From positions 159,507-223,506 of the IMG/VR virus record IMGVR_UViG_3300038465_000091: a stretch of DNA of 64,000 bases. One strand, written 5' to 3'. Positions 3,962 through 57,545 of this stretch are shown piece by piece (the stretch's first letter is position 1; each line of letters starts with the position of its first letter). A program made the translations under genes and the position numbers. The notes under the pieces were generated by a model. That model saw nothing but the letters and a program-made list of their open reading frames with translations, made no database searches and was not told the origin of the DNA.

Positions 3962-5653
3962 ATGACGCCTAGAAACCCACTCCTACAAAAAAGAGCACTC
4001 GACGAAACCATGGTCATGTGGAACGACCCTGATTACGCCGAAAATCAACACCACTCCGATCCCAGCTACACCACTCAAAACGGCAAGGATTACGCGGGAC
4101 GCGGCACCACTGAGAATGAAGAGGGTGCGCTTAAAGATGGCATCCCCGCAGGTCTCCTGTCGGTTGAACTCGGCAAAGAAGCCGCAGGCAGTACGGACCC
4201 CGTTGACTTGTTAAGGCGAGCGGCGGATACCCTGCAAGGATATTGCGCCGAGGTCAATGGCGACATGAACGATAGCTTGGCGACGGAGATAGAGGAGTAT
4301 CTCGCCCAACAGTCTCAACCCAAGCAAGCCGATACGGGCAACCCTCACGTCACTACGATGCCAAGTGCGCCAGCCCCAGTCGATCCCGATAACGCAACGT
4401 TCTTTAAGGAAAGTGAACCGAGTTCGCCGTTCACTGACGCTGAAGAAAAAATTAACGCCGCAGCCGCAGGTAGTGGTTTCCACTATGTGGGTCGCGTTAC
4501 AGACGGGACTACACTGTGGTACAGGGGGAAAGACGAACGTTTGTCGTTTGACCCTAAGACTGGAAACGTCACGCACCTGAGGGACGGGAAAGTTGTATCG
4601 GAATGCCCCATTAACCAACTCGGACGTATTAAGTCTGCCGCCGATAGCTTTCATGCGGCCCTGAAGAAGGGACTTAAGCAGGGCGCAATCCGCCCATCTC
4701 CCCACACTGTGTTTGAAAACAAAGTTGACAATGCCACGGGGAAACAGCCCATCGCACCCACGGAACCTTCCGATGATGAGGTGATGAAAGCTCAAAAAAC
4801 CCTCGAAAACGCTGGGGTTGGCGATCAAATTGGTGTCAACGCTTCGAAGACCGTCGAGGTTAAGGAGCTTGGAACCAAGATGAGCGGCTTCACTGGCGGC
4901 GGGCCGTTTAGCTGCATGGATTGCGTGCATCGTACTCCGCACTCTAAGAACGCCAAGGGCGAAGAAGTTGATTCGTGCAAGCATCCCGATGTGATGGCCG
5001 ATCCCGAGCTTGCAGATCGCAAACTCCCTGACGGAACTATCGAAGTTGACGCTGATGATTGCTGCCGTTTTGTAAGGCCGACGAAGAAAGAATCCGAGAA
5101 GGAAGCGGCGGTCACCAAGACCTACGGCACTGGCACACCTCCGGGCGGAACGCCCAATGATCCGAGTATCGACGATGAAGACGCGGACGAAGGGAAGACC
5201 TCTAGCCAAAAGCGAGCGGATGTTGATATTCACGAAACGCCGAAGTTCCTCCCGCCTCGCGATGACATTCGTCGGCACCTCGACAAGGATGTGCAGGATG
5301 AAATCACCGATGAGGTGATGGAAGGCGTGAAAGACGCATCGGAAGAGGGCGAATACTACTTGGATAAAGTTCGTGACATGAAGAACGAGGCCAAGGAAGC
5401 GTTCATGCAGGATGGTTCCATGCAACAAGAGGCTCAGGATGCGGGTATGAGCATGGAAGACCTGTGGAAAGAAATCGGTGGGGAGTTCACCGAGAACTAC
5501 TATATTTCGGCCTACTCCAAGCAGGGGTCGATTGCGGTTGAAGAGGGGTTTAAGTGCCCTAACTGCAAGAGCCTGAAGGGGAAACCAGTCGAAGATGGTT
5601 TGGACGACACGGTAAGCTTGCGAGAGTGTTTAACTTGCGGGAGCTTTTACTAA
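3962..5653 (+). CDS. Mosaic putative internal head protein (K-x-A delimited modules, Zn ribbons)
   Basis: 563 aa with QKRA, GKEAA, PKQAD, FKES, IKSAA, EKEAA, QKRAD, VKDAS, SKQGS separating unrelated segments; CxxC motifs (CMDC; CPNC...CLTC). Confidence 0.6.
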   Translation: MTPRNPLLQKRALDETMVMWNDPDYAENQHHSDPSYTTQNGKDYAGRGTTENEEGALKDGIPAGLLSVELGKEAAGSTDPVDLLRRAADTLQGYCAEVNGDMNDSLATEIEEYLAQQSQPKQADTGNPHVTTMPSAPAPVDPDNATFFKESEPSSPFTDAEEKINAAAAGSGFHYVGRVTDGTTLWYRGKDERLSFDPKTGNVTHLRDGKVVSECPINQLGRIKSAADSFHAALKKGLKQGAIRPSPHTVFENKVDNATGKQPIAPTEPSDDEVMKAQKTLENAGVGDQIGVNASKTVEVKELGTKMSGFTGGGPFSCMDCVHRTPHSKNAKGEEVDSCKHPDVMADPELADRKLPDGTIEVDADDCCRFVRPTKKESEKEAAVTKTYGTGTPPGGTPNDPSIDDEDADEGKTSSQKRADVDIHETPKFLPPRDDIRRHLDKDVQDEITDEVMEGVKDASEEGEYYLDKVRDMKNEAKEAFMQDGSMQQEAQDAGMSMEDLWKEIGGEFTENYYISAYSKQGSIAVEEGFKCPNCKSLKGKPVEDGLDDTVSLRECLTCGSFY

Positions 5654-5681: not shown

Positions 5682-6584
5682 ATGCCTTTTACGAAGATAG
5701 CTAACGCTGCGTTACAAGAACCAGTCATCGCACCCGAGGACTGGATCAAGCTGCATGGAAAGCACGTGTTCGGGCAGAAGTCCGCCTCGGGCTCCGCAGC
5801 CGCCGCTACCTTCAGGAAGTCCGCTGACACCTCGAAATACCTCTTGTCCCACTGCACCATTATGGCAAGTGTGATGGTCGAGGCCGACCCTTACGATTAC
5901 CTAATCAAGCCAGAATGCAGTCACCTCGTCAACAACAACGATGACGCATGGACGAACGAAGTTCTGAAGCTCAGCCACAGCAGCTTTGTTGGTGCTTTCA
6001 ACTTCGTGGAACATTTCCAGAATTCCAAGTATGCGAAGGGTCACATTCTCGACGCCATTCTTCGCAAGATCAAGTTGAACGGCGATGGCTCTGTGTGGGT
6101 CTATTTCTGCGATATCCTTGTCGCCACGGACCTCGGACACGAGAAGCTGATTGACGACATCCGCAGCGAAAAGGTCAAGTACCTGAGTATGGGCTGCGTG
6201 ACCGACCTCGTAATTTGCAGCTATTGCGGTGCTCGCGTCACCGATCAAAATACCTACTGCAACCATCTGTCGTATCAAAAGGGCATGTTCCTGACCGACG
6301 ACGATGGCATTGCACGTCGTGTCGCCGAGCTTTGTGGGCACAAGACAATGGAAAACGGCGGCGTGAAGTTTGTGGAAGCTTCGTGGGTTGCTACACCAGC
6401 ATTCCCCGGGGCTGCAAAACGTAACACGGTCTCCGAAGAGTGGGAAGGACCCCGCACCAAGTACACCAAATCGTCCACCGCTGGGAAGATGGCAAAAATT
6501 GCCAGTGTGAATGATGAATTCGAAACCCTTAATCTAGGTGATGCGTTAATGAACGCGAATTTGCACGGAAGGTTGACTCGGTAA
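5682..6584 (+). CDS. Prohead (capsid maturation) protease with Zn-binding insert
   Basis: VNNNDDAW...FNFVEH...KGHILDA...YLSMGC...CSYC...CNH...FVEASWVATPAFPGA fits the HK97/herpes-type Ser-His protease pattern; sits directly upstream of scaffold, decoration and capsid genes. Confidence 0.75.
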   Translation: MPFTKIANAALQEPVIAPEDWIKLHGKHVFGQKSASGSAAAATFRKSADTSKYLLSHCTIMASVMVEADPYDYLIKPECSHLVNNNDDAWTNEVLKLSHSSFVGAFNFVEHFQNSKYAKGHILDAILRKIKLNGDGSVWVYFCDILVATDLGHEKLIDDIRSEKVKYLSMGCVTDLVICSYCGARVTDQNTYCNHLSYQKGMFLTDDDGIARRVAELCGHKTMENGGVKFVEASWVATPAFPGAAKRNTVSEEWEGPRTKYTKSSTAGKMAKIASVNDEFETLNLGDALMNANLHGRLTR

Positions 6585-9043
6585 TGGCCGATCAGAAGAC
6601 AACGCACTACAATGGCTACACTCTGAGTTACGCCAGTCAGCATGAGTCAGTGATTATTAAGTTGGACGGCAAGAAAGTTAAAACAGCACCAAACCTAGAA
6701 AAGGCGAAGGCGTGGGTGAATCAAGCGCCGGGAAGCTTTAGTAAGGGCGAGAAAAAGGCTGGTACGCTAATGGCAAAAGAAATAGTTCATTGCACAAAGT
6801 GCGGCAACATGATCGAGTCGCTCAAGCCTGAAAAATGTGAGCATTGTGGTGGCAAAGCAAAAGTTAAGAAGGGCTCTATGAAATCAAAACTAGCAGCAGC
6901 AAAAGCGGCACTTGACCGCAAGCAGGCCGATTTGGACGCTATTGACGACCAGATCATGGGTCTGGACTCTGGTATCCCAATGGATGCCCCATCTACCCCC
7001 GAATTTGACCTCCTCACTGCGAAGCGCGAAGAGCTTGAAGAAGAGATTCGCACGATGCGCGAAGGCGTTCAGTTTATCTCCGAGTGGGAAAAATTGAAGG
7101 GCGGACAGTGGTCGGAAGGTATCAAATCCCAGTTGGACGGCCTCGACTCAGAAATCGCCAATATAGCTGGCAGCGAGGGTGCCGTTGAGTCGGGTATGGA
7201 TATGGGAGCCCCGATGGGCGATCCCCTAGCCGCCCCGCCAGTTCCCGAAGCCCCAGTAGCACCAATGGGAGACGTGGCCCCTGAAGCCGCCCCAGCACCA
7301 GAAGTGGCACCCGATGCCGCCGCACCAGAAACACCCGCACCTGCCTTGGAACCTCCGATGGCGAGCGCAAAATCCGCAGTAAATAAGAAAAATAACTATC
7401 AAACCTCTCAAAAGAGGGGCAATATTGCCTCTCCCCAGATGAAAAAGGAAGGCTCCAACATGGCAAATCCTACAGCTACCAAGCCCTCGAACTTGAAAGA
7501 GAAGCTTGCTGAACTGAAAACGAAGCGCGAGACGATCAAGAGGGAAGCACAGGTTCGCACCGCTGCGGCGTATACAATCGCCAACACGATGCTGCCGGGT
7601 GCCCCCGTCGAAAAGCGTCAGGCATTCGCCTCTTCGCTACTCCAAGGTAACGACACCAAAGCCCTCGTTGCTGCCCTCCGTCAAACCGCGATCAACGCCC
7701 ACTACTCCAAGGTCGCCGAACAATTCAAGGAAGTCCACAAAGTCGAACTCAATGATCTCCTCGAAGACCCGTCCGTTCTGAAGTCCGAGCGTTCGGCTGT
7801 CGAAAAGGAAATCAAGGGTGACGCGAAGTCGGCTACCTCGAAGAAGGCCGATGACCGCAAGGACGCAGGTCCGCAGACCGAGACGTACAACGACGGTCGT
7901 GGTTGCGGCGGCGGGACTCACTCTGAGCCGAAGGAAATGGAAGCCTCGAAAGCTGGCGACCGTCCCGACGCTGGCGAGAAGCCCGGTCAGACCGTGAACC
8001 TCAGCGACGGCAAATCTGCCGCCGCAAAGAAGTCAACATGCAAGGACGGCGAGAAATGCGCGGGTTGCGAGAACTGCAAGTCCGCCGCCAAGAAAGCCGC
8101 CGAGAAGAAATGCGACAAGTGCAAGGGTGAATGTAAGTGCGCTTCCAAGGTCGTTGCCAAGGCAAAGAAGGCCGACGAGCCGCCGATGGACGCCCCCGCA
8201 CCAGATGCAGGCGCACCGCCGATGGAAGACGAAATGGGCGATGCAGGTGCTCCGTTGGATGAAGTTCCTCCGATGGACGGTATGGAAGGTGAAGCTCCAG
8301 TCGATGACGCTGGCGCGATCCTTACCGACGAGAAGAAGATGGTCGTTCAGGAGGAAATCGACACCGTTAAGGATGCCGTTCAAGCTCTTGAGCAGGAACT
8401 TCTTGAAGAGAACGAAGAAGAGATTCCGCTTGCTCTTGAAGAAGGCGAACCCTCCGAAGAAGAGCTTGACCTTTCGTCCGTGTTCGATCAGGGCGAGATG
8501 GAAGACAAAGCCGCTTCGCTTGCCAACGAAGGTGAAGATCACACCGCTGGCGACGACGGCGATGGTAACTTCTTCGCCCCAACATCTGCCGCAGGCATGG
8601 AATCAGTGCTTGACGACAGCGGTATGCAGGTAGCCAGTATCGAGAGCTATTTCGATATGCAGGGCTCCGATGCCGACCCACTGTACAGCTTGATCGCATC
8701 TGAAACCAAGGAAGCAGCATCCGTCGCTGGTTTTGACGTGCTTGAGTCCTTCACTGGTGAAGTGGCGAACAAGATGAAGCAGGACACCACTGGCGAAGCC
8801 CGCGACAACGAAGGCGACCACGACGAAGACCTCTTCGTCGAAGCAATGAAGGACATCAAGCCTGAGGAACAGGGTGCAAAGCGTACCCCGCAGGATGCAC
8901 GTCCCGAGTTGCAGGCTCCGAAGTCCGCAGCCGCAAAGACCGCAGCCAAGGCTCCCACAGGCAGCATCAAGCGTGTCCGCCCTGTCGTAGCCTCACCGAA
9001 AGCCGTTGACATCGCTACCGCGTTGTTCGGCTCCGAAGAGTAA
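6584..9043 (+). CDS. Capsid scaffolding / prohead core protein
   Basis: Coupled to the protease gene (TAATG); very acidic, coiled-coil and low complexity; canonical position between protease and capsid. Confidence 0.65.
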   Translation: MADQKTTHYNGYTLSYASQHESVIIKLDGKKVKTAPNLEKAKAWVNQAPGSFSKGEKKAGTLMAKEIVHCTKCGNMIESLKPEKCEHCGGKAKVKKGSMKSKLAAAKAALDRKQADLDAIDDQIMGLDSGIPMDAPSTPEFDLLTAKREELEEEIRTMREGVQFISEWEKLKGGQWSEGIKSQLDGLDSEIANIAGSEGAVESGMDMGAPMGDPLAAPPVPEAPVAPMGDVAPEAAPAPEVAPDAAAPETPAPALEPPMASAKSAVNKKNNYQTSQKRGNIASPQMKKEGSNMANPTATKPSNLKEKLAELKTKRETIKREAQVRTAAAYTIANTMLPGAPVEKRQAFASSLLQGNDTKALVAALRQTAINAHYSKVAEQFKEVHKVELNDLLEDPSVLKSERSAVEKEIKGDAKSATSKKADDRKDAGPQTETYNDGRGCGGGTHSEPKEMEASKAGDRPDAGEKPGQTVNLSDGKSAAAKKSTCKDGEKCAGCENCKSAAKKAAEKKCDKCKGECKCASKVVAKAKKADEPPMDAPAPDAGAPPMEDEMGDAGAPLDEVPPMDGMEGEAPVDDAGAILTDEKKMVVQEEIDTVKDAVQALEQELLEENEEEIPLALEEGEPSEEELDLSSVFDQGEMEDKAASLANEGEDHTAGDDGDGNFFAPTSAAGMESVLDDSGMQVASIESYFDMQGSDADPLYSLIASETKEAASVAGFDVLESFTGEVANKMKQDTTGEARDNEGDHDEDLFVEAMKDIKPEEQGAKRTPQDARPELQAPKSAAAKTAAKAPTGSIKRVRPVVASPKAVDIATALFGSEE

Positions 9044-10982: not shown

Positions 10983-11942
10983 ATGGCAAATCTTTCTCGT
11001 ACACAACAGCAGACGGCTATGCTTGGACAGTTGCTCAAGACCGCAGGTGGTCGTCAAAAATTAGCGGCGTCGTTGGGACCGTCCCTCCGTCGTCGTCGTG
11101 ACTATATGAGCATTGCTCGTAAGGCTCTTATGGTCGAAACTCTTCCCGATGGCGCACTCCCCATCTACGACAAGGAATTCGATGTTAGCGCGATGACTGT
11201 GGGCTCGACCCCCGGCTCGTCTTTCGTTGAAGCCTTTGTGGTCGGTGAAGAAGGCGGCGACATTGTGCGTGTGACCAAGCCAAAGCGTGTCACGGTTCCG
11301 ACGTTTGAAATCGTGTCCAACCCCATGATCCCGATCACCCAGATCAAGGAACGTCGTTTCGATCTCGTTGCTCGCTCACTCAACCTCGCAAAGGCTGAAG
11401 TAGGCGCGGCAGAAGATGGTTACGTGTTCAATCTGTTTGACGGTGTTGCGGCGGGCGCAGTCGGCCATGCACCAAACGATCCGGTTTACAACCCCGACAT
11501 TCCAATCAACGCCCCCATCGACATCAACTCGCTGGCGGATGGATTTGGTCAGGTTGCACGCCACGATCTGTCGGTTGCTTTCATCTTCTTCAATCCTCGC
11601 GATTACACGGATTTGTTGAAGTGGACGCAGCAAAACATCGACCGTGAAACACAGCGCAAGCTGTTGAAGACGGGCGTCATGGGCTATCTCTGGGGCGCAA
11701 CGCTCCTCCAGTCTCGTAAGGTCGGCTACGGCTGCATCTATATTCTGGCGGACGCTGAGTTCCTCGGCGTAATCCCAGAACGTATTCCGTTGACCGTGAT
11801 GAGTGCCGACCGTCCTGATTTGAGGCAAATCGGATTCTCGATATTTGAGAATTTGGGCTTCCTCGTCTTCAATCCTTCAGGCGTTCAGCGGTTGACCGTT
11901 AACGGTCGCTTCAACGCGGCTGCCAACTTCGGCGAGAACTAA
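10983..11942 (+). CDS. Major capsid protein (HK97 fold)
   Basis: AAGGAG RBS; RRDYMSIARKALMVETLPDGALPIYDKE...RVTVPTFEIVSNP.I...KERRFD...AAEDG...GYLWGA...GFSIFENLG; followed by a strong terminator. Confidence 0.88.
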   Translation: MANLSRTQQQTAMLGQLLKTAGGRQKLAASLGPSLRRRRDYMSIARKALMVETLPDGALPIYDKEFDVSAMTVGSTPGSSFVEAFVVGEEGGDIVRVTKPKRVTVPTFEIVSNPMIPITQIKERRFDLVARSLNLAKAEVGAAEDGYVFNLFDGVAAGAVGHAPNDPVYNPDIPINAPIDINSLADGFGQVARHDLSVAFIFFNPRDYTDLLKWTQQNIDRETQRKLLKTGVMGYLWGATLLQSRKVGYGCIYILADAEFLGVIPERIPLTVMSADRPDLRQIGFSIFENLGFLVFNPSGVQRLTVNGRFNAAANFGEN

Positions 11943-12694: not shown

Positions 12695-12732
12695 AGTTAT
12701 TCATCTACCTAACCATTAGGTGGGGGCGTCTT

Positions 12733-14639: not shown

Positions 14640-14779
14640 TGTCTACGCCTTGGACTCGCGGCGATGTGCTCGATCTGCACATCTTCATCCTGCTGTTGAT
14701 CTGGTTCACACTGGACCGAAGCAACATCTATTTCACAGATGTGATCGCATTTGCAAAGAGGCTGTTCAAGAGGAAGTAA
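14639..14779 (+). CDS. Small membrane protein (46 aa)
   Basis: TAATG-coupled on both sides; MSTPWTRGDVLDLHIFILLLIWFTLDRSNIYFTDVIAFAKRLFKRK. Confidence 0.55.
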   Translation: MSTPWTRGDVLDLHIFILLLIWFTLDRSNIYFTDVIAFAKRLFKRK

Positions 14780-15579: not shown

Positions 15580-15673
15580 AGGGACTACAAATCCGTTATA
15601 TAGGTGCCGATTAGAGCGGTTGGGAGAAAACAGATGGCTAACGAATTTTACACCTACCTGTGGGAGCATCATA

Positions 15674-19102: not shown

Positions 19103-19126
19103 GACCGTTAAGTAGGAGAAAAACAA

Positions 19127-20800: not shown

Positions 20801-21037
20801 ATGTCGAAAAAGATAGCAGCACAAGATGCCACAGCAATGAACAGCCTGTATGCTGGCGAACTCGGTCGCCTCGGCCTCAAGGTCGCACAGAAGGACGCAA
20901 AGGACTCAGCCGCAGGGCAGTCTCACGACCCTCAGGCTTTCGCCGACCACCAAAATTATATGGATATCCTCGAATCGGTTCTGAAGGAAGACGAAAAGAC
21001 GGACGGCGAAGCCGCTAACGACCCGATCACCGACTAA
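20801..21037 (+). CDS. Small putative head protein (78 aa)
   Basis: GGAG RBS, upstream late-type motif, SKKIAA and LKVAQ sites. Confidence 0.65.
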   Translation: MSKKIAAQDATAMNSLYAGELGRLGLKVAQKDAKDSAAGQSHDPQAFADHQNYMDILESVLKEDEKTDGEAANDPITD

Positions 21038-21046: not shown

Positions 21047-24000
21047 ATGAAGCTGGACGCCACACAAGCGGCGGCTGCCAAGCTTTCCCACCTAATCGAG
21101 CCCGGGCGAACCGTCTATTCCACAGACGGCCACGCCTATAGGGTCTTGTCAAAGATCGCCGCTGGCGGCTCCTTGAGCTTCCGACTTGCGAACCTTCAGG
21201 GACAGCCGGTTCCAATCCCCGCAGACTTCTCCCCGATTGACGGGGCTCGGATGCGTTTCGCGTCCTTCCTGAAGTTCGCATTCAACAAAGACCTCACTGC
21301 GATTGTCAACTCACTGATTGAACAGGCGGGGCTCCCCACTGACCCAGCGATGAACTGGGCTGGGTGGTTTCAAAAGGTCTATGGCGAAATCCTAGCATCT
21401 GTTACCCCCAACTTTGATCTCCAAGACGAGATCATGTACAACACCGTCATTAAGCTCCTGATGATGCGTAAGGACAAGGACGGAAAAACACTTCTGGAAA
21501 ACGCTGCCGACAAAATTTCAGGTTTGTCCAGCGGCATTAACAAGATAAAGCGTCAACTTCGTGATCCGAACTTGACTCCAGACGAAAAGAAGACGCTAGA
21601 GAATCGACTCCACTGGCAGGAAAAAGTTAAGGCTGATCCTGTGGAGAAACAAGTCAGCAGCCTCCTGAAGAAAACTTTCGAGTATTACGCACGACATCAT
21701 GCTCGTGTGGATGCGAAAAATTACGCCTATTCGGTGCATACCCCCAGCCATCGCCTCGAAACGGAAAATATCGAAGACGTTGCTATCGAACAACCCACAC
21801 CATCTGGAGAGGGAACGTATAATATCCTTGATACCGAGGAACACGGCGTGGCTCCGGGCGTCGGACTGGGCGAGTCCGAACGCGACATCATGCAGTTCAT
21901 CGATCAATTCCAAGAGTGGGTGAGGGGCAAGGAGACCCCGAAATCCGCTCCTAACTATGCCGAATTGCTCAGGATTTACTGGGATCAGGCACAGCGAATT
22001 GACGATGTTAAGATCAGCGATCTGACTCAAGAGTGGATTCGCCGCACAGGTTTGAGCTTTGACTCCCTGAAGCAGTATCGGGATAAGCTCGGCATCCTGA
22101 TTCGAGATTTCGTCTACGAGAACAAAGTCCAACTGGGCAACTCCTACAAGTTCGTGGACTTGCTAAAGCACATGTTCCCGCCGCCAAAGCAAAAAGCACG
22201 TCCCGCCAAGGCTTCGTCCGACCACCATCACGACCGAACCGAATGCAGAAAGTGCGGCAATGTCCAGACTTGCCGTTGCCCTGCGACCAAGGTCACGTCC
22301 TATGTGGCTTCCTGCGACAACTGCAAGACGGCGGATGGTTTGGAAGCACGAGTGCTTGATCCGAACTGTCCTGAATACAAAAAATACGCCGATGATTTGA
22401 TCCGTCGCTTCGGTCAGACATCGCAGGTCTCCGAGATGCTGGGACAATTCGAAGATGAGCATTTCCCCACTTGTGTACACTGCCAGCAATACAATCAGGA
22501 TTGGCGGGCAGGTAAGGTATCAGCGGCAAAACCCAAGTGCCCCCATTGTGGCTCTGACGATTACGGCTTGATGCCCACGGACTTCGAGACCGCCAAGTGC
22601 AATGGTTGCGGCAAGAACTGGAATCATGGCATCGTCAAGGGTATCAATGATCCGAAGGAAGCTGCTCGCACGGCGGATGATGAAGGAGGGGGTAAAACGT
22701 GCGAAAATTGTGGGAGTTATTACGGTGGGTATACATGTCTTAATTGTGGGCGAAAAAAGAAGCTGGAAGAAGAGGTAGATCGTACCAGCAAGGAACTCAA
22801 GAAGTTCCCCAAGGGACCAACAGGCATGACGCCCGACGATGTGAAGGCTACTCCCGAATGGCAGGCGGCTAAACGTAATTACGGTCAAGCCTTCGCCAAG
22901 CTGCGAGAGTTCAATTCCAAAAAGTGTGCTGCCGATGATCCGACTCGTGACACCCTTGACGAGACGCTGAAGTATGACAACCCAGACAAGGACACCAAGG
23001 GGTTCCACGACCCCGCCGACCTCGGTCAATGCGCCTGTGAGTGGGATGAATGTCCGCTGGGTCACCAAGCGGGTGGGTGCCAGAATCCCGCAGCCCACAT
23101 GCTTGAAATCTATGGATACAAAACCCGCTACTGCCAGCCATGCACCGACGCAACTATCGAGTACATCCGATTGGAACAAGGCACTGGCGATCCCGATGAC
23201 ACGGTTAAGATTCTGTCCTCCGCACATACTGCTGGTGCCCCGTACTGCGACGGTTGTGATCGTCTGAAGGCAAACTGCATCTGCGAAGGCTGCGAGTGCC
23301 CAGAAAATAAAAACGCAGGCAAGTGGGGCGATAAAATCAAGAAGATGGAAGCTCGACGTGGCGAGTTCATCGAGAAAACTCTTAAGAATGCCGTAGGGCC
23401 AACGGAAGAGGATGATCTTGAGATGGCTAGGCGTGGTCCGATTCAATACGAGGAACTACCCGAAATGGAAACCCGAATTCGCCCACGAGAAGAACAGTCG
23501 AAATTTCCGACTCCTCGACCTACTACACGGCGTAAGGAGGGGATGCTCGGTCATGATTTTGTGGATGCCGATCAGCAAGCGATTCGCCCCGACATTACGC
23601 CGGGTGACACTGGGCGCTTACCTCATGGACGCACGCAGGGATCAGTTAAAGAATCTGCGGAACTTGCTGGTCGCGGCGGGGATAAAGATGACGTGCGCGG
23701 TGCGGGCGATCTGTGGCGTGAAGAGTTTTACCAAAGCGGCAATGCGCCCCCAAAGATTGCGACATCAGGTAAATGGAAAGTTCTTCTGCGGGATTCCAAG
23801 GGGAATCAGCGTGAGCAGGAGGTTTCAGGCGTAAATTACGGCTCTGCCGAACGTGCTGTGAGAAAATATATGAAGAATGGTGAAAGGGTTGTGTCGATGA
23901 CTATCGCAAGCAAGACGGCTGCCCCCGCTCCTGCGGCACCCGCACAGGCACAAGCACCAGCGCCCGCCCCAGCACCAGCAGCCACTCCCGCCCCTCCAGC

Positions 24001-26950
24001 GCAAGCGCCAAGCGCGAACACGGTAGTTGCCCCACCGCCCGGAACGCCGATTGCTCTTCCCTCGGGACAAGGAGAAGATACACCGGAAAAAAGAACAGTT
24101 CCGCCAGAAATCCCGAACAGGAAGTACCACATGACAAGTAAAAATTCCGCACTTAAAACCGAACAGAATACGCCAGAGATGGAAGCTCAGGTAGCTCAAC
24201 TGGCACAAACGAACCCGCTCACGGAGATTCACGAGAACTGCAACCCGTACTTCGAGCACGGGCAATGGTGGGTTGTCTGCGGGCCGTGCGGAGCCACTTG
24301 GTCGGTCGTTGATGTGGGTCAGTTCATCGGAGATGAGGGCGACATCGACCTTGAAGAGATTGATAACGGTGACGGTTCTTGTGCGGAGAATTTCCACGAG
24401 TCTGCCGATCACAGCAGCCCACGTCAGGGCTTCATCTATCAGGCGGAAATGTGGTGCCCGACTTGTGCGAAGGAGATCGCCGCCGACATTCAGAAGAACT
24501 ACCCTAAGCAGGTCCCCGCCGATCCAACGGATGAGTATTCTTATGATTCCGACAGCTACCCGAAGGGACCGTTCTTCGAGGAAGAATCAGACGCTCCTGA
24601 GCACTGCGCGGGCTGCCACATTTTCCTTGAGAACCCTCTGACCACGCATGGTCAGGAGTACATGCAGTCGATGGTTGACGAAGCTCTGGCGAAGGGACGC
24701 GGCGAAGAGCCGCACATCAAGGAATGGATGGACTTTTACGGCTATCATCCTGACACTGAGGGAGCCGAAGACGAACATGAGGCGTCCGCCGCTTCCGACA
24801 GAATCAATGCGATGCCGCAGCGTGGCAAGCCAAAGACTCCCGAAGAGTTGGGGCTGGTTGAGAAATCCGATACGGAACTCCGTCTTGAGGGGATTCCTCC
24901 GCGTCCTAAGAAAACCGCCGATGGCGCTTCGTTGCTTGAACCAGAAGTTAGCTTCGAAGATAAACCAGACCCCTTGCTCGACAACAGTAATAATTTGCAA
25001 AACTACAGCTATGCACCGCAGAAAGACACAACAGATAGTAGGGACACGGCCACGCTGGACGACAACATCGAAATTTTGAAACGTTACGGCTATGCCCTTT
25101 TCAGTGGTGGAAAATCGGGTGGGAAACAATTCTGGAAAAGTCCCATTGGAACTGTAGTTATCATGTCCACCAGCGGTGAGTGGATGTTTGGTGCGGACGG
25201 TACCAGAGGAACGACCAGCACGGATTTAGACAGTAAGCTTTTGAAATACCACCACAAAATGGTCCCAAAAGCGGGGGCGTCCAAAACCGCCGAAATTGAT
25301 ATGGGTCAGCTTGAGAGCGTGCAGGATCGAAAAGATCGCCTGAGCAAGCCCGACAAGAGTCCGATGTACGGCGTGACACTTCTTCGCGAACTTTCAGCCC
25401 CCGGCATTCCAAAGGGTGAAGTGATCGTGTTCGGTTATTACTACCCAGATGGGCAATGGGGCAAGCAGCAGCTTCAATGGTGGACAACGATGGCGAAGAC
25501 CGAGTATGATAGCACCGTCACTCAGGTCAAACGTCGCAGTCGCGGTACGAATCAGGAAAAGTCAACGGCCCTGTACGAGTCGTTGAAAGGACGTGGTACG
25601 GCGGTTGAGCCGGGTACGTCGTCTGACGCTATCATCGAGCAATTCAAGACGCAGAAGGAATCATCCATGGAAAACAAACAGGCTGCAATCGCACAACCCA
25701 CGTCTGGCGAGGACGAAGGCTATTACGTCAAGGTCACCTACACTAAGGGCGGTATTGATCTGAGCCCGACTGAGAATCTTCTAAGGGAAGTCGCCGAGGA
25801 GCAAATGCAGGATGAAAGCGGCAACTCGACTTATGAGTTCGCCCACAACATTGAGCTTGACGACATCTGGGAAATGATGGAGGATTTCTTCACCAATGGC
25901 TGGGAGAAAGTAAATCCCGAGGATATTGGTGCGCTAACTGACGGAGAAATCTTCTCCGATCCCAACGGCAACGTCTACTGGCATGAGCGGTATCAGATCG
26001 AAAGCATGACCGATGAACTGAAGGCAGGCAACACGGTGTTCATGCAGTACGGCGGCAATCTGTTCGATGAGGAAGATGAAGAAACGCCTGCTCCCGATCC
26101 GAACCAGATGAACCTCCCACTCCAGTCTTCCAAGAAGGAAGCCACGGGCGAGATGAGTCAGTCCGAGGCTGATGACCGTGAGGCATGGCCGATGCACCAC
26201 GCTATCGCTGACGCTCTGGGCGGCACGGTCAAGGCTTTTGACCAGTATCAAGGTCCGTACGTTCTTGTGGGCTCTGAGGCTCGCGGACAGGGCACCTATG
26301 CTCCCGCAATCCCGATGAAGGGTACCGTGCGCCTCTGGGTACAGGCGGACGAGGGTAGTGACGGGGCATTCCTGACCGTCTACAACGAAGACAACGATAA
26401 AGTTAGCGAGCCGTTCCATTGGGAAGACATGGAAGGCGCGGTCAATGCCGCCATGAGCGTAATGGGCGATGAGCCCGAGACAATCGAAGCCTCCACCAAG
26501 CAGGCGGAACTTGACATCCCCAAACCGGACAGTTGGGGGTGTACTTGTTCAGATAAAGGAGCACGCGGACAACACAAGTCCAATTGTCCTAAGGCTCCGA
26601 AGCAACGTGGCGAGTACCACGGCGCGAGTAAGCAAGCAGCGCCCGGCGACGGTGGACTACAACGCGACGTGCAGAACCAGTACGAGAACCACCCCCTGAT
26701 CGAAATGCTGTGGGGTTCCCTGAAACGTGACCCAGCGAACAAAGATCGCGTCCAGACGGCATGGGGCACCAAGACGAAGCAGGGTTTGGTGCTCAGTGTA
26801 GCTCGCGCCATGAAGGAAAGCCCCGTCTCGGGTAAAGAAAGCAGTCAGAAATGCAAATGCGGCAAACCGACAGCTAAAGGCGATCACCGCTGCGAGGACT
26901 GCCGCTCAAAACAGCATTCCGAGGCAGAAAAAGCGACTGGCGTAGAATAA
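21047..26950 (+). CDS. Giant mosaic polyprotein 1 (1967 aa), putative virion cargo
   Basis: AAGGAGG RBS; about 390-aa helical N-terminal domain followed by more than 20 short unrelated modules (many CxxC) separated by KTA/KEA/KQA/KES/HES/HEA. Confidence 0.75.
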   Translation: MKLDATQAAAAKLSHLIEPGRTVYSTDGHAYRVLSKIAAGGSLSFRLANLQGQPVPIPADFSPIDGARMRFASFLKFAFNKDLTAIVNSLIEQAGLPTDPAMNWAGWFQKVYGEILASVTPNFDLQDEIMYNTVIKLLMMRKDKDGKTLLENAADKISGLSSGINKIKRQLRDPNLTPDEKKTLENRLHWQEKVKADPVEKQVSSLLKKTFEYYARHHARVDAKNYAYSVHTPSHRLETENIEDVAIEQPTPSGEGTYNILDTEEHGVAPGVGLGESERDIMQFIDQFQEWVRGKETPKSAPNYAELLRIYWDQAQRIDDVKISDLTQEWIRRTGLSFDSLKQYRDKLGILIRDFVYENKVQLGNSYKFVDLLKHMFPPPKQKARPAKASSDHHHDRTECRKCGNVQTCRCPATKVTSYVASCDNCKTADGLEARVLDPNCPEYKKYADDLIRRFGQTSQVSEMLGQFEDEHFPTCVHCQQYNQDWRAGKVSAAKPKCPHCGSDDYGLMPTDFETAKCNGCGKNWNHGIVKGINDPKEAARTADDEGGGKTCENCGSYYGGYTCLNCGRKKKLEEEVDRTSKELKKFPKGPTGMTPDDVKATPEWQAAKRNYGQAFAKLREFNSKKCAADDPTRDTLDETLKYDNPDKDTKGFHDPADLGQCACEWDECPLGHQAGGCQNPAAHMLEIYGYKTRYCQPCTDATIEYIRLEQGTGDPDDTVKILSSAHTAGAPYCDGCDRLKANCICEGCECPENKNAGKWGDKIKKMEARRGEFIEKTLKNAVGPTEEDDLEMARRGPIQYEELPEMETRIRPREEQSKFPTPRPTTRRKEGMLGHDFVDADQQAIRPDITPGDTGRLPHGRTQGSVKESAELAGRGGDKDDVRGAGDLWREEFYQSGNAPPKIATSGKWKVLLRDSKGNQREQEVSGVNYGSAERAVRKYMKNGERVVSMTIASKTAAPAPAAPAQAQAPAPAPAPAATPAPPAQAPSANTVVAPPPGTPIALPSGQGEDTPEKRTVPPEIPNRKYHMTSKNSALKTEQNTPEMEAQVAQLAQTNPLTEIHENCNPYFEHGQWWVVCGPCGATWSVVDVGQFIGDEGDIDLEEIDNGDGSCAENFHESADHSSPRQGFIYQAEMWCPTCAKEIAADIQKNYPKQVPADPTDEYSYDSDSYPKGPFFEEESDAPEHCAGCHIFLENPLTTHGQEYMQSMVDEALAKGRGEEPHIKEWMDFYGYHPDTEGAEDEHEASAASDRINAMPQRGKPKTPEELGLVEKSDTELRLEGIPPRPKKTADGASLLEPEVSFEDKPDPLLDNSNNLQNYSYAPQKDTTDSRDTATLDDNIEILKRYGYALFSGGKSGGKQFWKSPIGTVVIMSTSGEWMFGADGTRGTTSTDLDSKLLKYHHKMVPKAGASKTAEIDMGQLESVQDRKDRLSKPDKSPMYGVTLLRELSAPGIPKGEVIVFGYYYPDGQWGKQQLQWWTTMAKTEYDSTVTQVKRRSRGTNQEKSTALYESLKGRGTAVEPGTSSDAIIEQFKTQKESSMENKQAAIAQPTSGEDEGYYVKVTYTKGGIDLSPTENLLREVAEEQMQDESGNSTYEFAHNIELDDIWEMMEDFFTNGWEKVNPEDIGALTDGEIFSDPNGNVYWHERYQIESMTDELKAGNTVFMQYGGNLFDEEDEETPAPDPNQMNLPLQSSKKEATGEMSQSEADDREAWPMHHAIADALGGTVKAFDQYQGPYVLVGSEARGQGTYAPAIPMKGTVRLWVQADEGSDGAFLTVYNEDNDKVSEPFHWEDMEGAVNAAMSVMGDEPETIEASTKQAELDIPKPDSWGCTCSDKGARGQHKSNCPKAPKQRGEYHGASKQAAPGDGGLQRDVQNQYENHPLIEMLWGSLKRDPANKDRVQTAWGTKTKQGLVLSVARAMKESPVSGKESSQKCKCGKPTAKGDHRCEDCRSKQHSEAEKATGVE

Positions 26951-26992: not shown

Positions 26993-28147
26993 ATGGCAAA
27001 CAAAGTGAAGAAGGCAAATCGTGAGACCGTCCGTAAGGCTATCGTAGCCCGTCGCGAAGCTCGCAAGCAGGAAAAAGCCGCGAATTATGCAAAAATGCGC
27101 GAATGCGCGAAGTCTCCAGCGAAGTTCGCCAAGGCCCTTGACGAGCTTGTAGCGAAGACCGCACGTCAAGCCTACAGCATGGACGCCCTCCGCGAAAATC
27201 TCGGATTGGTGAAATTTGCCAAGGAAGTTCCCGCCAAGGTCCGCATCGCCGCCGCTAAGAATTACGGCAAGAAGTTTGTCCGTATCGCCGAAGAGCAGCC
27301 AGACATTCTGGCTGACGCCCTCCAGCAAGCCTACAAGGGCTTGGATGAGCAGGCAGCGGCCATGGAAATCGCCGCCGAAGCTCTGGGTATCGATCTGGGT
27401 GCCTCGCCTGCTGAGAAGGCATTCACCGACGAAGGCAAGCACGAACTTGAGCTTGGCGAAGACAAGGGCGAAGAGAAAGCGACAGAAGAAGGTCCTGATT
27501 TCGGAGCCGAAGAAGAGACCGAAGCGGAAGAAGGGGCCGATAAATTTGTATCGGATTCTGAAGCGGAGGCCGAACCTTTGCCCGAGGAAGATAAAGAAGC
27601 CAGTGGTTCCGACGCTTTTAGCACCGACCGCGACGAAGGTGGGTCGCCGAAAGCACCACAAAAGACTCAGAGCCCACAGGCTCAGGGCGAAGCGGCAAAG
27701 CAGTCGGCAGCGCAAGGCGCTGGCAAATTCGTAAAGGAAATCCCGCAGGCTCAGGGAAAGACAGCGGTCACCGAAGCAAAGCATTGTCCCGAGTGTAAAT
27801 ACCCGGGGAGAACGGTTGAACCTGAGACTGGCAAATGCCGTCATTGCAAAAAGAAAGTGATGGAGCCGTTCGACAAGAAGGCCGCAATGGGCAAGAAAGA
27901 TTTCATCGCCTTGGCGGATGCAATCAAGAACATGAGCGTTGGACCTGATGAGAAGCGAAATATCGCTGAAGGTCTGTGCGAGACGTTTCGCGCATCCAAC
28001 CCACGTTTCATGAAAGATCGTTTCATGGACTACGTTATGGGCCTCGGCGGTTCGAGTGGCGGTAAGGTGAAGCCGCAAGGAACGCCACGCCCGCGCAAGG
28101 GCGTCATTGATCCGTATGCTAGTGCTGGTGGGCATCCTTTGGAGTAA
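26993..28147 (+). CDS. Putative internal head protein
   Basis: AGGAG RBS; shares DAFSTDRDEGGSPK with ORF 1496; after KKAA carries the module MGKKDFIALADAIK...NPRFMKDRF. Confidence 0.65.
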   Translation: MANKVKKANRETVRKAIVARREARKQEKAANYAKMRECAKSPAKFAKALDELVAKTARQAYSMDALRENLGLVKFAKEVPAKVRIAAAKNYGKKFVRIAEEQPDILADALQQAYKGLDEQAAAMEIAAEALGIDLGASPAEKAFTDEGKHELELGEDKGEEKATEEGPDFGAEEETEAEEGADKFVSDSEAEAEPLPEEDKEASGSDAFSTDRDEGGSPKAPQKTQSPQAQGEAAKQSAAQGAGKFVKEIPQAQGKTAVTEAKHCPECKYPGRTVEPETGKCRHCKKKVMEPFDKKAAMGKKDFIALADAIKNMSVGPDEKRNIAEGLCETFRASNPRFMKDRFMDYVMGLGGSSGGKVKPQGTPRPRKGVIDPYASAGGHPLE

Positions 28148-29299: not shown

Positions 29300-29303
29300 A
29301 GGA

Positions 29304-29861: not shown

Positions 29862-29900
29862 ACCCCCATTATACCAGCCCGGGGACCAAAATGGCTAGTT

Positions 29901-47439: not shown

Positions 47440-47477
47440 GCAAACAAAGAACTTAAGGAACGGTACAGGGTAGAATA

Positions 47478-55457: not shown

Positions 55458-57545
55458 ATGGCAGACGAGAAGAAACCGTACAGCAGCATCGTTGACGCAT
55501 TCTTGGACGACCGCGAGCCCGAATGGAAGGACCTCGGCTTGAAGGACGCACAGGACTCAGGCGAGGAACAGTTGGATCGCTCTCACCAGTACGTCGATAA
55601 AGAGTTTGTGGACGAGATCGCGGAATCCGCCTCTCACCACACCCCTCTGTGGCCCGCTCGCACGGGCTCTGCCGAGAAGAATGCTCAGCGAGAACGTCTG
55701 GAGCGTGCCCGTGGCACCCACTTGGACCGCATGACAGCCAAGGATCAGCACTTTAGCGGCGTCGGTGGTTCGGATCAGAACTGGCGTGTACAGGCTACTC
55801 AGCACCCCGAAGATTACAGCACGAAGCTGGGCGACGACGATTCGCTGTTCGCGGAAGTTACGGAAACGTTGGAATCAGCAGCCTCATCGGGCAAGGTTGA
55901 GAAGAAGAACGTGTCGGACGCACAGGTTCAGAACTACGTCCACGCCCTGCTCAATCAGGGCATGGCACCTTCGAAGATCGCCGCGAAGCTCAAGAAGCTG
56001 GCTGAGATTGAGTTATTCAATCACCAGATGGCGACTCAGTACCTACAAGAAAATGCGGGACTCGTTGGGATGGCGTTCCTAGAGCCCAATACCTACATGG
56101 ACAAAAACTCCCCGACTTATGAACGAGAGAAGCACGGCAGCGCAGGTGAGAACAAGGAATTTGATACAAGTACAGTCGAAGGTCTCAAGGCAGCGGAGAG
56201 CTATAAGTCGAGGCTAGAAAATAAATACGATAGCGTTATCACTAAGTCTATCGGTCTCGACCGCGTTCGAATTACTGGAGGTCCATCCAAACAAGCAAGT
56301 TCGAGCAACGATTGCGTTCGTCAGCACGAGCAGTGGAAGAATGCGGGCATCACACCACGGGCGGCATCTGTAAAGCAGATCAGCGCGTGTACCGGATGTC
56401 AGTATTTCTCGAAGAACGGTAGCTCCAAGACCTGTGGTCTCTACCACTTACCAGTGGTGGGCAACACGGCTGAGCTTTCACCCATCGTGAACAAGCTGAC
56501 CGCAGGCGTGCCGAACAAGCAGAAGCGGGCGGCTTTGGTCCAGATCGCCAATGGCAATGGCACCAAGGTTGGTTCCATGCCCATCGCTCCGAAGACAAGC
56601 GCATCTGTCTCTCGTCACCCGAGTCTTGGCAGCGTAGAAGCGCAGGCGAAGCGCGTGGGCCGCACAGTAACGGCGGACTTCGATTCTTCGCACGTTGCAG
56701 CGTTGCATGAGAAGGGTCATTCGCTAAAGGCTATCTTCCGTGCGGCTGATAAACAGTTCGGTGCGTTTGCAGCAGGCAAGGCGCTACGTGAGTTCGTTGG
56801 CAGCCTGAGACCAAACGTCAATGGGCAGATCGTTCTCGCGAAAGTTGATGCGGAATTCCTCGCCAAGGCTGGGATGCATAATCAGAATTTTGTGGCGGGT
56901 GCAAAGTGTGCATCCTGTGCGACACATTCGGCGGCGGTGCAGAAGCACAAGTCAGCGGCGAATGTCGATTACATCTCTCGGGTTCCGCACACGGGATTCC
57001 AAGAGAGTAACCCCGATCAGGTACGTCACGCACACCGTGCGAGCAAACCCGAGCTTGATGCCAGCGTCATCGAGCGGTATCATAAGAAGGGGCACCCGCT
57101 GGAAAAGATTTACAAGCAGGCAGCGTCCAAGTTCGGCACCGCCCAAGCAAGCAAAGCCGTGAAGGAATTCATCGCCAGTCTGAAGCGTAAGCCAATCAAG
57201 GTTGCGCTGAGTCAGATCGACTGCTCGTTCCTTAAGAACAAACTGGCCGATCACAATCCGATTATTGGGGCACATAAGTGCGGCTCTTGTACGTATCGCA
57301 AAGGAATGCACTGCGGTCTGACGGGTGGTACGCTCTTGAGCTTCCCCGGTATGGACAAAACGTCGTCCAATCACAAGATTGGGGAAGGTGCGCCAGAGGA
57401 TGGGCGTACCATTCTTGCGGAGTTTGACTTGATGTCGAATTCAGGGCGTCCGGGCGACACGAAGATGGCCGACATCGAAATGAACACGGACAGACCCGAT
57501 GATACTCATCTGGGGAGTCATTTTGAAATGGGAGACATAGAGTAA
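55458..57545 (+). CDS. Putative head protein with a duplicated Zn-binding domain and K-x-A sites
   Basis: Internal repeat HEKGHSLKAIF..A.KQFG...A..EFV.SL...GAKCASC versus HKKGHPLEKIY..A.SKFG...A..EFI.SL...GAHKCGSC. Confidence 0.7.
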   Translation: MADEKKPYSSIVDAFLDDREPEWKDLGLKDAQDSGEEQLDRSHQYVDKEFVDEIAESASHHTPLWPARTGSAEKNAQRERLERARGTHLDRMTAKDQHFSGVGGSDQNWRVQATQHPEDYSTKLGDDDSLFAEVTETLESAASSGKVEKKNVSDAQVQNYVHALLNQGMAPSKIAAKLKKLAEIELFNHQMATQYLQENAGLVGMAFLEPNTYMDKNSPTYEREKHGSAGENKEFDTSTVEGLKAAESYKSRLENKYDSVITKSIGLDRVRITGGPSKQASSSNDCVRQHEQWKNAGITPRAASVKQISACTGCQYFSKNGSSKTCGLYHLPVVGNTAELSPIVNKLTAGVPNKQKRAALVQIANGNGTKVGSMPIAPKTSASVSRHPSLGSVEAQAKRVGRTVTADFDSSHVAALHEKGHSLKAIFRAADKQFGAFAAGKALREFVGSLRPNVNGQIVLAKVDAEFLAKAGMHNQNFVAGAKCASCATHSAAVQKHKSAANVDYISRVPHTGFQESNPDQVRHAHRASKPELDASVIERYHKKGHPLEKIYKQAASKFGTAQASKAVKEFIASLKRKPIKVALSQIDCSFLKNKLADHNPIIGAHKCGSCTYRKGMHCGLTGGTLLSFPGMDKTSSNHKIGEGAPEDGRTILAEFDLMSNSGRPGDTKMADIEMNTDRPDDTHLGSHFEMGDIE

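Follow-up and report, generated by a model that had tools for sequence, protein, structure and literature searches.

In a 64,000-nucleotide window from a giant soil phage (IMG/VR record IMGVR_UViG_3300038465_000091, positions 159,507 to 223,506; all coordinates below are those of the window), we focused on the ORF at 21047–26950 on the plus strand, which is an uninterrupted reading frame of 1967 aa without stops. The phage is a jumbo myophage related to Tunturiibacter phage Tunturi_5 and, more distantly, to Bacillus phage G. The gene lies after the tail-fibre genes in the structural module and is syntenic with Tunturi_5 gp343–gp345. It encodes a conserved N-terminal domain followed by about twenty small modules separated by short Lys-x-Ala-type junctions. 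The features of this ORF and of the associated genes are as follows:

21047..22216 (+), conserved N-terminal domain with a putative carrier role (residues 1–390), ending in the family-wide P-A-K-A-S junction
22217..26947 (+), hypervariable cargo region (residues 391–1967), with about 20 modules of roughly 28–153 aa separated by K-x-[A/S] junctions
22523..22663 (+), mobile zinc-ribbon module (residues 493–539), preceded by a K-V-S site and ending in K-E-A
23762..23920 (+), small alpha/beta module (residues 906–958) between K-I-A (903–905) and K-T-A (956–958)
24404..24784 (+), module of residues 1120–1246, bounded by H-E-S and H-E-A
24920..25291 (+), module of residues 1292–1415, bounded by K-T-A on both sides
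25292..25663 (+), module of residues 1416–1539, bounded by K-T-A and K-E-S
26843..26947 (+), C-terminal zinc-ribbon module (residues 1933–1967) appended after G-K-E-S
20801..21037 (+), 78-aa ORF just upstream, a conserved partner of the polyprotein gene, with K-I-A at residues 4–6
26993..28147 (+), 384-aa ORF just downstream, matching the C-terminal part of Tunturi_5 gp345
3962..5653 (+), K-x-A-rich ORF directly upstream of the protease
5682..6584 (+), predicted prohead (head maturation) protease, the candidate enzyme
6584..9043 (+), scaffold-like acidic, Pro/Ala-rich protein following the protease, rich in K-x-A
10983..11942 (+), major capsid protein with K-T-A (19–21) and K-L-A (26–28) in its N-terminal arm
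55458..57545 (+), K-x-A-rich head-module ORF, orthologue of Tunturi_5 gp348
58086..63773 (+), second putative polyprotein (1895 aa) with a different conserved N-terminal domain and K-x-A-bounded modules

The N-terminal domain was 25–58% identical in the homologous proteins P0001, P0002, P0110, P0042, P0030, P0005, P0009 and P0098, and 29% identical to Tunturi_5 gp345 over residues 12–139. An AF2 model built from 11 sequences (pLDDT 76) was mostly helical, but fold searches against PDB and BFVD returned no match with E ≤ 0.001, and a profile of the domain family gave nothing significant against PDB sequences, so that neither a self-protease nor a known head-targeting fold could be assigned. The downstream 384-aa ORF matches gp345 residues 489–630 at 29% through its residues 3–135; in Tunturi_5 this part and the N-terminal domain are one protein. 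The upstream 78-aa ORF is 43% identical to Tunturi_5 gp344, and a gene of the same size precedes the distant orthologue P0042 in contig L011.

Megablast of the ORF against 50,697 phage records found nothing, and Pfam and PHROG scans of the whole ORF, with NCBIfam on the N-terminal domain only, gave only sub-threshold or tiny matches. Modularity was confirmed by independent evidence. Two orthologues from IMG/VR contigs (L005, 2002 aa; L007, 2109 aa) differ from the focal protein by whole-module insertions and deletions; both lack the modules of residues 1292–1415 and 1416–1539 as units, and both end at the position of the G-K-E-S junction that precedes the C-terminal zinc ribbon. Together with about 150 more distant homologues, they show modules gained, lost and reordered as whole units at the junction sites, and distant orthologues share only 177–436 of the 1577 cargo residues. 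Several modules also exist as free-standing small genes in unrelated phages, with single modules matching genes in Erythrobacter phage XM05 and Xanthomonas phage Xoo-sp13. More than 70 free-standing small metagenomic proteins align from their own residue 2–4 to residues 1128–1233, a module also represented by an annotated 132-aa gene inside an array of small genes in phage XM05. Ten small homologues examined for annotation carried only 'hypothetical protein' or no name.

The zinc ribbon of residues 493–539 was found, at 70–89% identity, inside about 40 otherwise unrelated proteins, where it is typically preceded by K-x-A-A and followed by K-[T/E]-A-[A/S]; one of these carriers, P0134, has NUDIX, InPase and TopoIB domains. 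The 1292–1415 module occurs at a different position in the orthologue P0001 (791–904) and follows K-K-A in the unrelated protein P0040, and a paralogous module in ORF 58086 also ends in K-T-A. In the unrelated protein P0033, the 1416–1539 module starts right after K-T-A and ends at K-E-S, as it does in the focal protein. Two modules start and end at the same motifs in the unrelated proteins P0033 and P0040. An AF2 model of cargo residues 391–1590, built from only three sequences and therefore lacking alignment depth, was too poor overall (pLDDT 33) for a general comparison of domain limits with motif positions; only residues 568–623 and 908–955 were confidently folded, the latter (pLDDT 69–85) with limits matching the K-I-A and K-T-A motifs on either side.

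The first-pass annotation, made from the sequence alone, had described this ORF as a chain of small unrelated modules joined at K/H/R-x-A/S/G junctions, and had found the same motif in ORFs 58086, 3962, 1496, 26993 and 55458, in the scaffold and around the protease core. This observation held, and every junction string it listed is present, but the motif is narrower than proposed, being roughly [S/A]-K-[T/E/Q]-[A/S] followed by A/S/D/E. Compared with within-protein shuffles, loose K-x-A in the focal ORF alone was not significantly above composition (18 observed vs 12.4 expected, z 1.7), while K-[TEQ]-[AS] (13 vs 4.2, z 4.4) and K-[TEQ]-A-[AS] (4 vs 0.3) were enriched. H-x-A was marginal (7 vs 3.9), and the R-x-A and K-x-G variants were at chance level, so that R at P3 and G at P1 were rejected. 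Across the head-module ORFs named in the annotation, K-x-A was the most over-represented of all 400 gapped pairs (123 vs 67, z 7.6), as opposed to 43 vs 46 in all other ORFs of the window. As this ORF set was first chosen by eye for the motif, its pooled z-score carries some selection bias, which does not apply to the independent sets (Tunturi_5, 30 scaffold-like proteins and 38 long homologues). Per ORF, the enrichment was clear for 58086 (30 vs 14.8, z 4.4), 3962 (9 vs 3.4, z 3.2), 55365 (14 vs 6.3, z 3.4, given for the ORF listed above as 55458..57545) and 6584 (23 vs 12), with z 3.2–4.4 over these four, but weak for 1385/1496 (z 1.4) and 26993 (z 0.7). The scarcity of the motif in tail and fibre proteins, also pointed out in the annotation, is real but is explained by their very low lysine content, with observed counts being about as expected. 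A logo from 504 sites in 41 proteins showed Thr at P2 (4.1x), Ser/Ala at P6–P4 (about 2x) and Ala/Ser at P1' (about 2x).

We considered whether the pattern could reflect Lys/Ala-rich composition, or DNA microhomology used for module shuffling, without any function at the protein level. The candidate ORFs are indeed rich in K (7–10%) and A, and in ORFs 1385 and 26993 composition explains most of the count. However, shuffles preserving the composition of each protein were strongly exceeded, the reverse pair A-x-K was only weakly enriched, and codons at the sites vary freely (AAG or AAA, all Ala codons, and Ser TCN or AGC), indicating that the signal is at the protein level. This explanation is therefore very unlikely and largely refuted.

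The motifs were also positioned at module borders. Indel boundaries lay within 4 residues of a motif more often than expected from random placement (p = 0.02, 0.007, and 0.0004 in the three orthologues), homology limits in independent proteins coincided with motifs in excess of expectation (37 vs 17.8 and 40 vs 22.5), motif sites sat in hydrophobic-poor stretches (p ≤ 0.0003), and motif-delimited segments behaved as presence/absence units across 153 homologues (p = 0.004 vs random cuts; p < 0.001 vs cuts at other lysines). At the same time, some junctions lack the lysine in an orthologue (for example, L-T-A-A in P0001), only 15 of 24 aligned sites keep the motif class in all three orthologues, and the K and A/S columns are not more conserved than the modules themselves, so conservation alone does not argue for function.

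We then examined the link between the motif and the predicted protease. ORF 5682–6584 matched PHROG 18299 ('head maturation protease', E = 4e-15), the single match on which the family assignment rests, with no Pfam, NCBIfam or PDB sequence match, and was 62% identical to Tunturi_5 gp331. His111, Ser169-Met-Gly and a CxxC...CxH cluster are invariant from this phage to phage G and mycobacteriophage LinStu, the catalytic role of His111 and Ser169 being inferred from position only. The gene order is protease, scaffold-like ORF and then major capsid protein (PHROG 2522, 71% identical to that of Tunturi_5). K-x-A brackets the protease core in the window, Tunturi_5 and phage G, and was present in the last 45 residues of 44 of 45 distinct relatives and in the first 14 residues of at least 35 of 45. 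In 30 non-redundant counterparts of the scaffold-like protein, itself a partial match to Tunturi_5 gp332, K-x-A was the top gapped pair (423 vs 232, z 14.6). It also dominated Tunturi_5 gp328, gp332, gp348 (z 4.7) and gp350, as well as the phage G protease-region proteins (z 4.1). The pairing of motif and protease was conserved in Tunturi_5, phage G and 80 metagenomic relatives (80 related protease loci kept out of 208 found), the pattern expected for a prohead-protease recognition site. In contrast, the protease–scaffold fusion of LinStu showed only a weak K-x-A excess (z 2.7, third-ranked), and the motif may not extend to that distant branch. The two sites in the major capsid protein arm are conserved in relatives, but so is the whole arm.

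The same motif marks the other large ORFs of the head module. The N-terminus of the second putative polyprotein (ORF 58086) matches Tunturi_5 gp350, its module 762–894 matches free-standing genes in many phages, and its orthologues are 1478–1971 aa long, with indels ending at K-T-A. ORF 3962 had no family match in the scans. As regards a virion context, Tunturi_5 gp345 is labelled a virion structural protein by annotation software, and one focal module is 49% identical to part of Tunturi_5 gp328, annotated as a 'DNA ejection protein'.

Taken together, the best explanation, which we hold with moderate confidence, is that the ORF encodes a 'carrier plus cargo' polyprotein of a clade of jumbo and mega myophages (the Tunturi_5/phage G lineage), in which a mainly helical N-terminal domain of about 375–390 residues is followed by modules that look independently folding (zinc ribbons, small alpha/beta units and acidic or Pro/Ala stretches) and are gained, lost, duplicated and reordered as whole units. 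The junction signal would most likely be the recognition site of the phage's own prohead serine protease. In this view, the polyprotein is built into the prohead with the scaffold; the protease then trims itself, degrades the scaffold and cuts the polyprotein into many small proteins that stay in the head in fixed proportions and leave with the DNA at infection. Our analysis demonstrates the modular anatomy, the specific motif, its placement at module borders, its restriction to head-module proteins and its conservation together with the protease family, whereas presence in the virion, cleavage, the enzyme responsible, the exact bond (Ala/Ser at P1 is assumed by analogy with herpesvirus assemblin, which cuts Ala|Ser), targeting by the N-terminal domain, packaging, ejection and any role in host takeover or anti-defence are inferred. 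Literature searches for a K-x-A prohead-protease motif, for phage G processing data and for phage capsid polyproteins found no precedent, no usable cleavage data, and no proteomic or biochemical evidence of cleavage or virion location in this clade. The interpretation offered in the first-pass annotation, of an expandable cassette packaged into the prohead and cut after K-x-A into injected effectors, is only partly supported: the cassette of small units and the motif shared with scaffold, protease and other head-module ORFs stand, while the 'effector' label rests only on homology to free-standing small genes of unknown function.

An alternative, which we consider unlikely, is that this is an uncut multi-domain virion or 'polyvalent' protein acting as one long chain, with S-K-T-A-A strings serving merely as a preferred flexible linker. 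Many polyvalent proteins are delivered uncut (PMC5512222), and the linker-like context of the sites, the loss of lysine at some junctions and the unexceptional conservation of motif columns are all in line with this. Nevertheless, a generic linker would not need a fixed K-[T/E/Q]-A register with a fourfold preference for Thr at one position, would not recur at both ends of the protease core from this phage to phage G, and would not be the single dominant gapped pair in scaffold proteins, which are normally degraded. It is also possible, though doubtful, that the sites are cut by a host protease or another phage protease, in the cytoplasm or after ejection, as a way to express many small proteins in equal amounts; nothing links enzyme and substrate directly, and the model of Iyer et al. 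allows processing after delivery (PMC5512222). However, the motif is concentrated in the proteins expected to be inside a prohead and is at expectation in all other ORFs of the window, and no other peptidase domain was found in the polyprotein or its N-terminal domain by family scans and fold searches. Finally, the products could be structural, namely processed internal-core or DNA-organising proteins like the phiKZ inner body, with zinc ribbons binding DNA and without a role in the host. There are many zinc ribbons and acidic or Pro/Ala stretches, no enzymatic or known anti-defence domain was found in our scans, and very large capsids often hold internal protein bodies (PMC7411985). We regard this as unlikely, since the cargo is hypervariable, reordered and exchanged between different polyproteins, which is unusual for a structural core, and module homologues occur as free-standing small genes in arrays of small genes in unrelated phages, one of them inside the terminal repeats of phiCbK-like phages.

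Among known systems, the closest are polyvalent proteins and the protease-processed internal head proteins of T4 and phiKZ. The SPN3US E proteins, processed by gp245, exemplify cutting of many internal head proteins at a short P3-x-P1 motif (PMC10052503). T4 IPI–III and Alt are processed by gp21, and phiKZ inner-body proteins by gp175. These are late-expressed head-module proteins whose motif is shared by scaffold, protease and internal proteins, and whose small to mid-size products are kept in the head and ejected. However, their motifs end in Glu (L/I-x-E, S/A/G-x-E, A-x-E) as opposed to K-x-A/S, and the substrates are mostly single proteins losing a propeptide, while here one chain is predicted to yield about 20 unrelated small products with rapid turnover of module content.

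Polyvalent proteins of phages and conjugative elements (Iyer, Burroughs, Anand, de Souza and Aravind 2017; PMC5512222) are likewise very long chains of unrelated domains, encoded next to virion genes and predicted to be packaged, delivered with the DNA and processed into units. The focal ORF shares the multi-domain architecture and the location among virion genes, and one zinc-ribbon module with the NUDIX–InPase–TopoIB polyvalent protein. Classical polyvalent proteins, however, carry 2–15 mostly enzyme-sized domains and are thought to be processed by an embedded zincin-like peptidase (MPTase), whereas our scans detected no domain of the effector repertoire (methyltransferase, ART, NUDIX, nucleases, lysozyme, LPD families) and no peptidase domain here, the units are 28–153 aa, and processing is predicted to act in trans at a defined junction motif. 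No MuF family match was found in Pfam or PHROGs that would suggest a MuF-fused polymorphic toxin, and the fold of the N-terminal domain is unmatched. The phage P1 Dar system (DarA, DarB, DdrB, Hdf) also comprises head-packaged proteins, some cut before or during assembly, and Tunturi_5 gp350 is annotated as a 'DarB-like antirestriction protein', although this is a prediction of structure-based software and no methyltransferase or helicase domain was detected in the ORFs of the window.

For herpesvirus assemblin and the HK97 gp4/T4 gp21-type prohead serine proteases, the protease–scaffold–capsid gene order, invariant His and Ser, and self-trimming at both ends are the expected features. Assemblin cuts (V/L/I)-x-Ala|Ser, a P3-x-P1 pattern with Ala at P1 as proposed here, but a Lys at P3 is not known for any member. 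Polyproteins of RNA viruses and retroviruses are similarly cut by the virus's own protease at short junction motifs into many functional proteins in fixed proportions, but they encode core replication and structural proteins in a fixed order, while here the units are accessory, hypervariable and reorderable, in a DNA phage that has no need for polyprotein expression.

A more far-reaching possibility, which remains tentative, is that a large clade of soil jumbo and mega phages loads its capsids with polyproteins that the prohead protease cuts after K-x-A/S into dozens of small, ready-made early proteins, of the same kinds that other phages encode as separate early genes, delivered with the DNA before any transcription starts. 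The junction motif would then work as a universal adaptor allowing any small gene to be plugged into the cassette, and a new substrate specificity would be defined for the prohead-protease family.

If the sites are cut, this is the first phage virion polyprotein that yields many unrelated small proteins, and the first prohead protease predicted to read Lys at P3 with Ala/Ser at P1; Tunturi_5 is an isolated relative with a culturable, non-pathogenic soil host, Tunturiibacter psychrotolerans X4BP1. The junction motif would then work as a parsing rule, splitting thousands of metagenomic giant ORFs into discrete candidate host-takeover or anti-defence proteins (our profile search found 1364 proteins with E ≤ 0.001), and the same design could be adapted to load chosen small proteins into phage heads. 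It would also show how very large capsids use spare volume to carry a fast-evolving protein payload.

The window is part of a jumbo myophage and encodes the end of a tail sheath, a head maturation protease, a scaffold-like protein, a major capsid protein, tail and fibre proteins, a glycosylation cluster, DNA methyltransferases, and three GIY-YIG homing endonucleases. The closest isolate is Tunturiibacter phage Tunturi_5, a 309-kb phage of an Acidobacteriota host, with 71% identity in the capsid protein and 62% in the protease, while more distant relatives include an uncultured 485-kb phage, Bacillus phage G, and Bxz1-like mycobacteriophages. Gene order matches Tunturi_5 gp326–gp350. The features considered here, in window coordinates, are as follows:

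5682-6584, predicted head maturation (prohead) protease
12050-12520, gp335-like ORF, matching only the first ~82 residues of Tunturi_5 gp335
12691-13629 (+), GIY-YIG homing endonuclease gene (PHROG 314)
14650-19789, 39009-43695 and 53493-54398, tail and fibre-like ORFs
21047-26950, focal ORF (1967 codons)
22523-22663, zinc-ribbon module (focal residues 493-539)
24920-25291, module with a family member in the second giant ORF (focal residues 1292-1415)
26993-28147, 384-aa ORF downstream of the focal ORF
40406-41170 (-), GIY-YIG homing endonuclease gene (PHROG 314)
46516-53028 and 28643-30860, a glycosylation cluster (two nucleotide-sugar epimerases, a methyltransferase and glycosyltransferases) and two DNA methyltransferase genes on the minus strand
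54755-55453 (+), GIY-YIG homing endonuclease gene (PHROG 314)
58086-63773, second giant ORF

The first of the three homing endonuclease genes sits between the gp335-like ORF and the tail gene at 13620, and may therefore mark an insertion that truncated or split a structural gene.

The focal ORF is an open reading frame throughout, and all of the junction strings that the first-pass annotation had listed in it are present. However, the loose motif proposed there, K/H/R-x-A/S/G, is too wide: within-protein shuffles showed no excess of R-x-A or K-x-G, and only a marginal excess of H-x-A. In the focal ORF, plain K-x-A was observed 18 times against 12.4 expected (z = 1.7), whereas the narrower K-[TEQ]-[AS] was observed 13 times against 4.2 (z = 4.4), and K-[TEQ]-A-[AS] 4 times against 0.3. 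The observation is thus confirmed, but for a narrower motif than had been claimed.

To avoid presupposing a motif, we scored all 400 gapped pairs in the head-module ORFs that the first-pass annotation had named. K-x-A ranked first (123 observed vs 67 expected, z = 7.4–7.6), with KTA and KQA among the top tripeptides, while in the remaining 12,985 residues of the window K-x-A was at expectation (43 vs 46), so that composition alone does not explain the signal. By contrast, the scarcity of the motif in tail and fibre proteins does follow from their very low lysine content (0.6–2%, against 7–10% in the head-module ORFs), a contrast that is also seen in Tunturi_5. A logo built from 504 K-x-A sites in 41 long family members gave the fuller consensus of Ser/Ala at P6–P4, Lys, Thr (4.1-fold), Ala, and then Ala/Ser.

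We then asked whether the motifs lie at module borders. IMG/VR holds identical copies of this phage and two related phages, whose orthologues of the focal protein are 2002 aa (L005) and 2109 aa (L007) in length and 62% identical at the N-terminus. In a three-way alignment, most large differences were whole-module insertions or deletions next to a motif. Two window-specific modules (residues 1292-1415 and 1416-1539) lie between K-T-A, K-T-A, and K-E-S; a module present in L005 and L007 is inserted between K-E-S and K-T-A; another lies between K-T-A-S and K-G-A; and a window-specific zinc ribbon is appended after G-K-E-S, at the position where the other two proteins end. Gap boundaries fell within four residues of a motif more often than random placement gives (p = 0.02, 0.007, and 0.0004), and the sites lie in hydrophobic-poor stretches compared with both random positions and other lysines.

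A full HMMER search of 1.84 billion representative proteins with residues 391-1590 found 1364 relatives. Across 153 homologues, segments cut at the motifs were either wholly present or wholly absent far more often than segments cut at random (p = 0.004) or at other lysines (p < 0.001), and in independent proteins homology limits coincided with a motif about twice as often as expected. The ~47-residue zinc-ribbon module at focal residues 493-539 is 70–89% identical inside about 40 otherwise unrelated metagenomic proteins of 136–2365 aa, where it is typically preceded by K-x-A-A and followed by K-[T/E]-A-[A/S]; it is far more conserved than its surroundings, which suggests a fixed partner (capsid, protease, or a conserved host target). 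In two unrelated proteins, P0033 and P0040, modules 1416-1539 and 1292-1415 begin right after K-T-A or K-K-A, and the former ends at K-E-S. Module order also differs between orthologues, with focal residues 1297-1411 located at 791-904 in the orthologue P0001, ahead of modules that precede them in the window. Codons at the sites vary freely, indicating a protein-level signal and not DNA microhomology. Nevertheless, some junctions lose the lysine in an orthologue, and motif columns are not more conserved than the modules themselves. An AF2 model of the cargo was too poor to relate domain limits to motifs in general, although its two confident segments (residues 568-623 and 908-955) do fit motif-bounded units.

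The first ~375–390 residues of the focal protein are conserved at 25–58% identity in at least eight metagenomic proteins of 787–1915 aa, and residues 12-139 are conserved with Tunturi_5 gp345 (667 aa). At the same time, the same proteins share only 177–436 of the 1577 residues of the region that follows, which we refer to as cargo. The conserved domain ends in a family-wide P-A-K-A-S junction. An AF2 model based on 11 sequences was fairly confident (pLDDT 76) and mostly helical, but had no significant match in PDB or BFVD; a role as a prohead-targeting carrier is therefore inferred from the constancy of the domain. A conserved 78-aa gene precedes the polyprotein gene here, in Tunturi_5, and in a distant relative. 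The 384-aa ORF downstream matches the C-terminal part of Tunturi_5 gp345, whose N-terminus matches the carrier domain; either the gene was split here or cargo plus a stop codon was inserted.

No module matched a curated family in Pfam and PHROG scans, or, for the N-terminal domain, in NCBIfam. Several modules do have free-standing homologues, including a 132-aa gene in Erythrobacter phage XM05, a 75-aa gene in Xanthomonas jumbo phage Xoo-sp13, and more than 70 small metagenomic proteins aligned from their own residue 2–4. The XM05 and Xoo-sp13 genes lie in arrays of small unnamed genes. One focal module is 49% identical to part of Tunturi_5 gp328, annotated as a 'DNA ejection protein', and the zinc ribbon is shared with a NUDIX-InPase-TopoIB polyvalent protein. 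The second giant ORF of the window has the same design: its N-terminus is conserved with Tunturi_5 gp350, its orthologues are 1478–1971 aa with indels ending at K-T-A, and one of its modules matches free-standing genes in many phages, including genes inside the terminal repeats of phiCbK-like phages. It also carries, at ORF residues ~470-565, a paralogue of focal module 1292-1415 (W-K-S-P-I-G-T ... Y-H-H-x-V-P-K ... K-T-A). Modules therefore move between polyproteins that have different carrier domains.

To examine the link to the prohead protease, we considered ORF 5682-6584, which matches a head-maturation-protease PHROG. This putative protease keeps an invariant His111, Ser169-Met-Gly, and, next to the latter, a CxxC...CxH cluster (Cys179, Cys182, Cys193, His195; a possible zinc site) from this phage to phage G and mycobacteriophage LinStu. 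K-x-A sits just inside both ends of the protein in the window (T-K-I-A-N and A-K-I-A-S), in Tunturi_5, and in phage G. Among 45 distinct relatives from 80 metagenomic loci, 44 have K-x-A-[S/M/T] in the last 45 residues, and at least 35 have K-x-A in the first 14. The ORF following the protease is scaffold-like (acidic and Pro/Ala-rich), and in 30 non-redundant counterparts K-x-A is by far the top gapped pair (423 vs 232, z = 14.6). Tunturi_5 shows the same excess in gp328, gp332, gp348, and gp350, and not in its tail proteins, and phage G shows it in the protease region. The capsid protein has K-T-A and K-L-A in its N-terminal arm, but the whole arm is conserved, so this adds little. In Bxz1-like mycobacteriophages, the homologous protease domain is the N-terminus of a 1286-aa protein (LinStu gp97), a protease-scaffold fusion preceded by a 1266-aa LysM protein; the motif is only weakly enriched in this distant LinStu fusion. 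A motif shared by protease ends, scaffold, and internal proteins is the signature seen for T4 gp21, phiKZ gp175, and SPN3US gp245.

As inferred here, the system works like the protease-processed internal head proteins of T4, phiKZ, and SPN3US, and like the polyvalent proteins of Iyer et al. It differs from the former in the motif (K-x-A/S rather than x-x-E) and in yielding, on this prediction, many unrelated small units from one chain, and from the latter in lacking enzyme-sized domains and an embedded peptidase and in having a defined junction signal. We found no description of such a polyprotein, or of a K-x-A prohead-protease specificity, in the searchable literature, and studies of phage G report no cleavage sites.

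The interpretation offered in the first-pass annotation, that polyproteins are packaged into the prohead and cut after K-x-A into small proteins for injection, is partly supported: cleavage, packaging, ejection, and function remain inferences from sequence, whereas the cassette architecture and its link to the protease-associated motif are well supported by comparative data. Orthologues of the second polyprotein (on both of two IMG/VR contigs of 455 kb and 463 kb) and of the protease (on the 463-kb contig) indicate that the system extends to megaphage-sized genomes.
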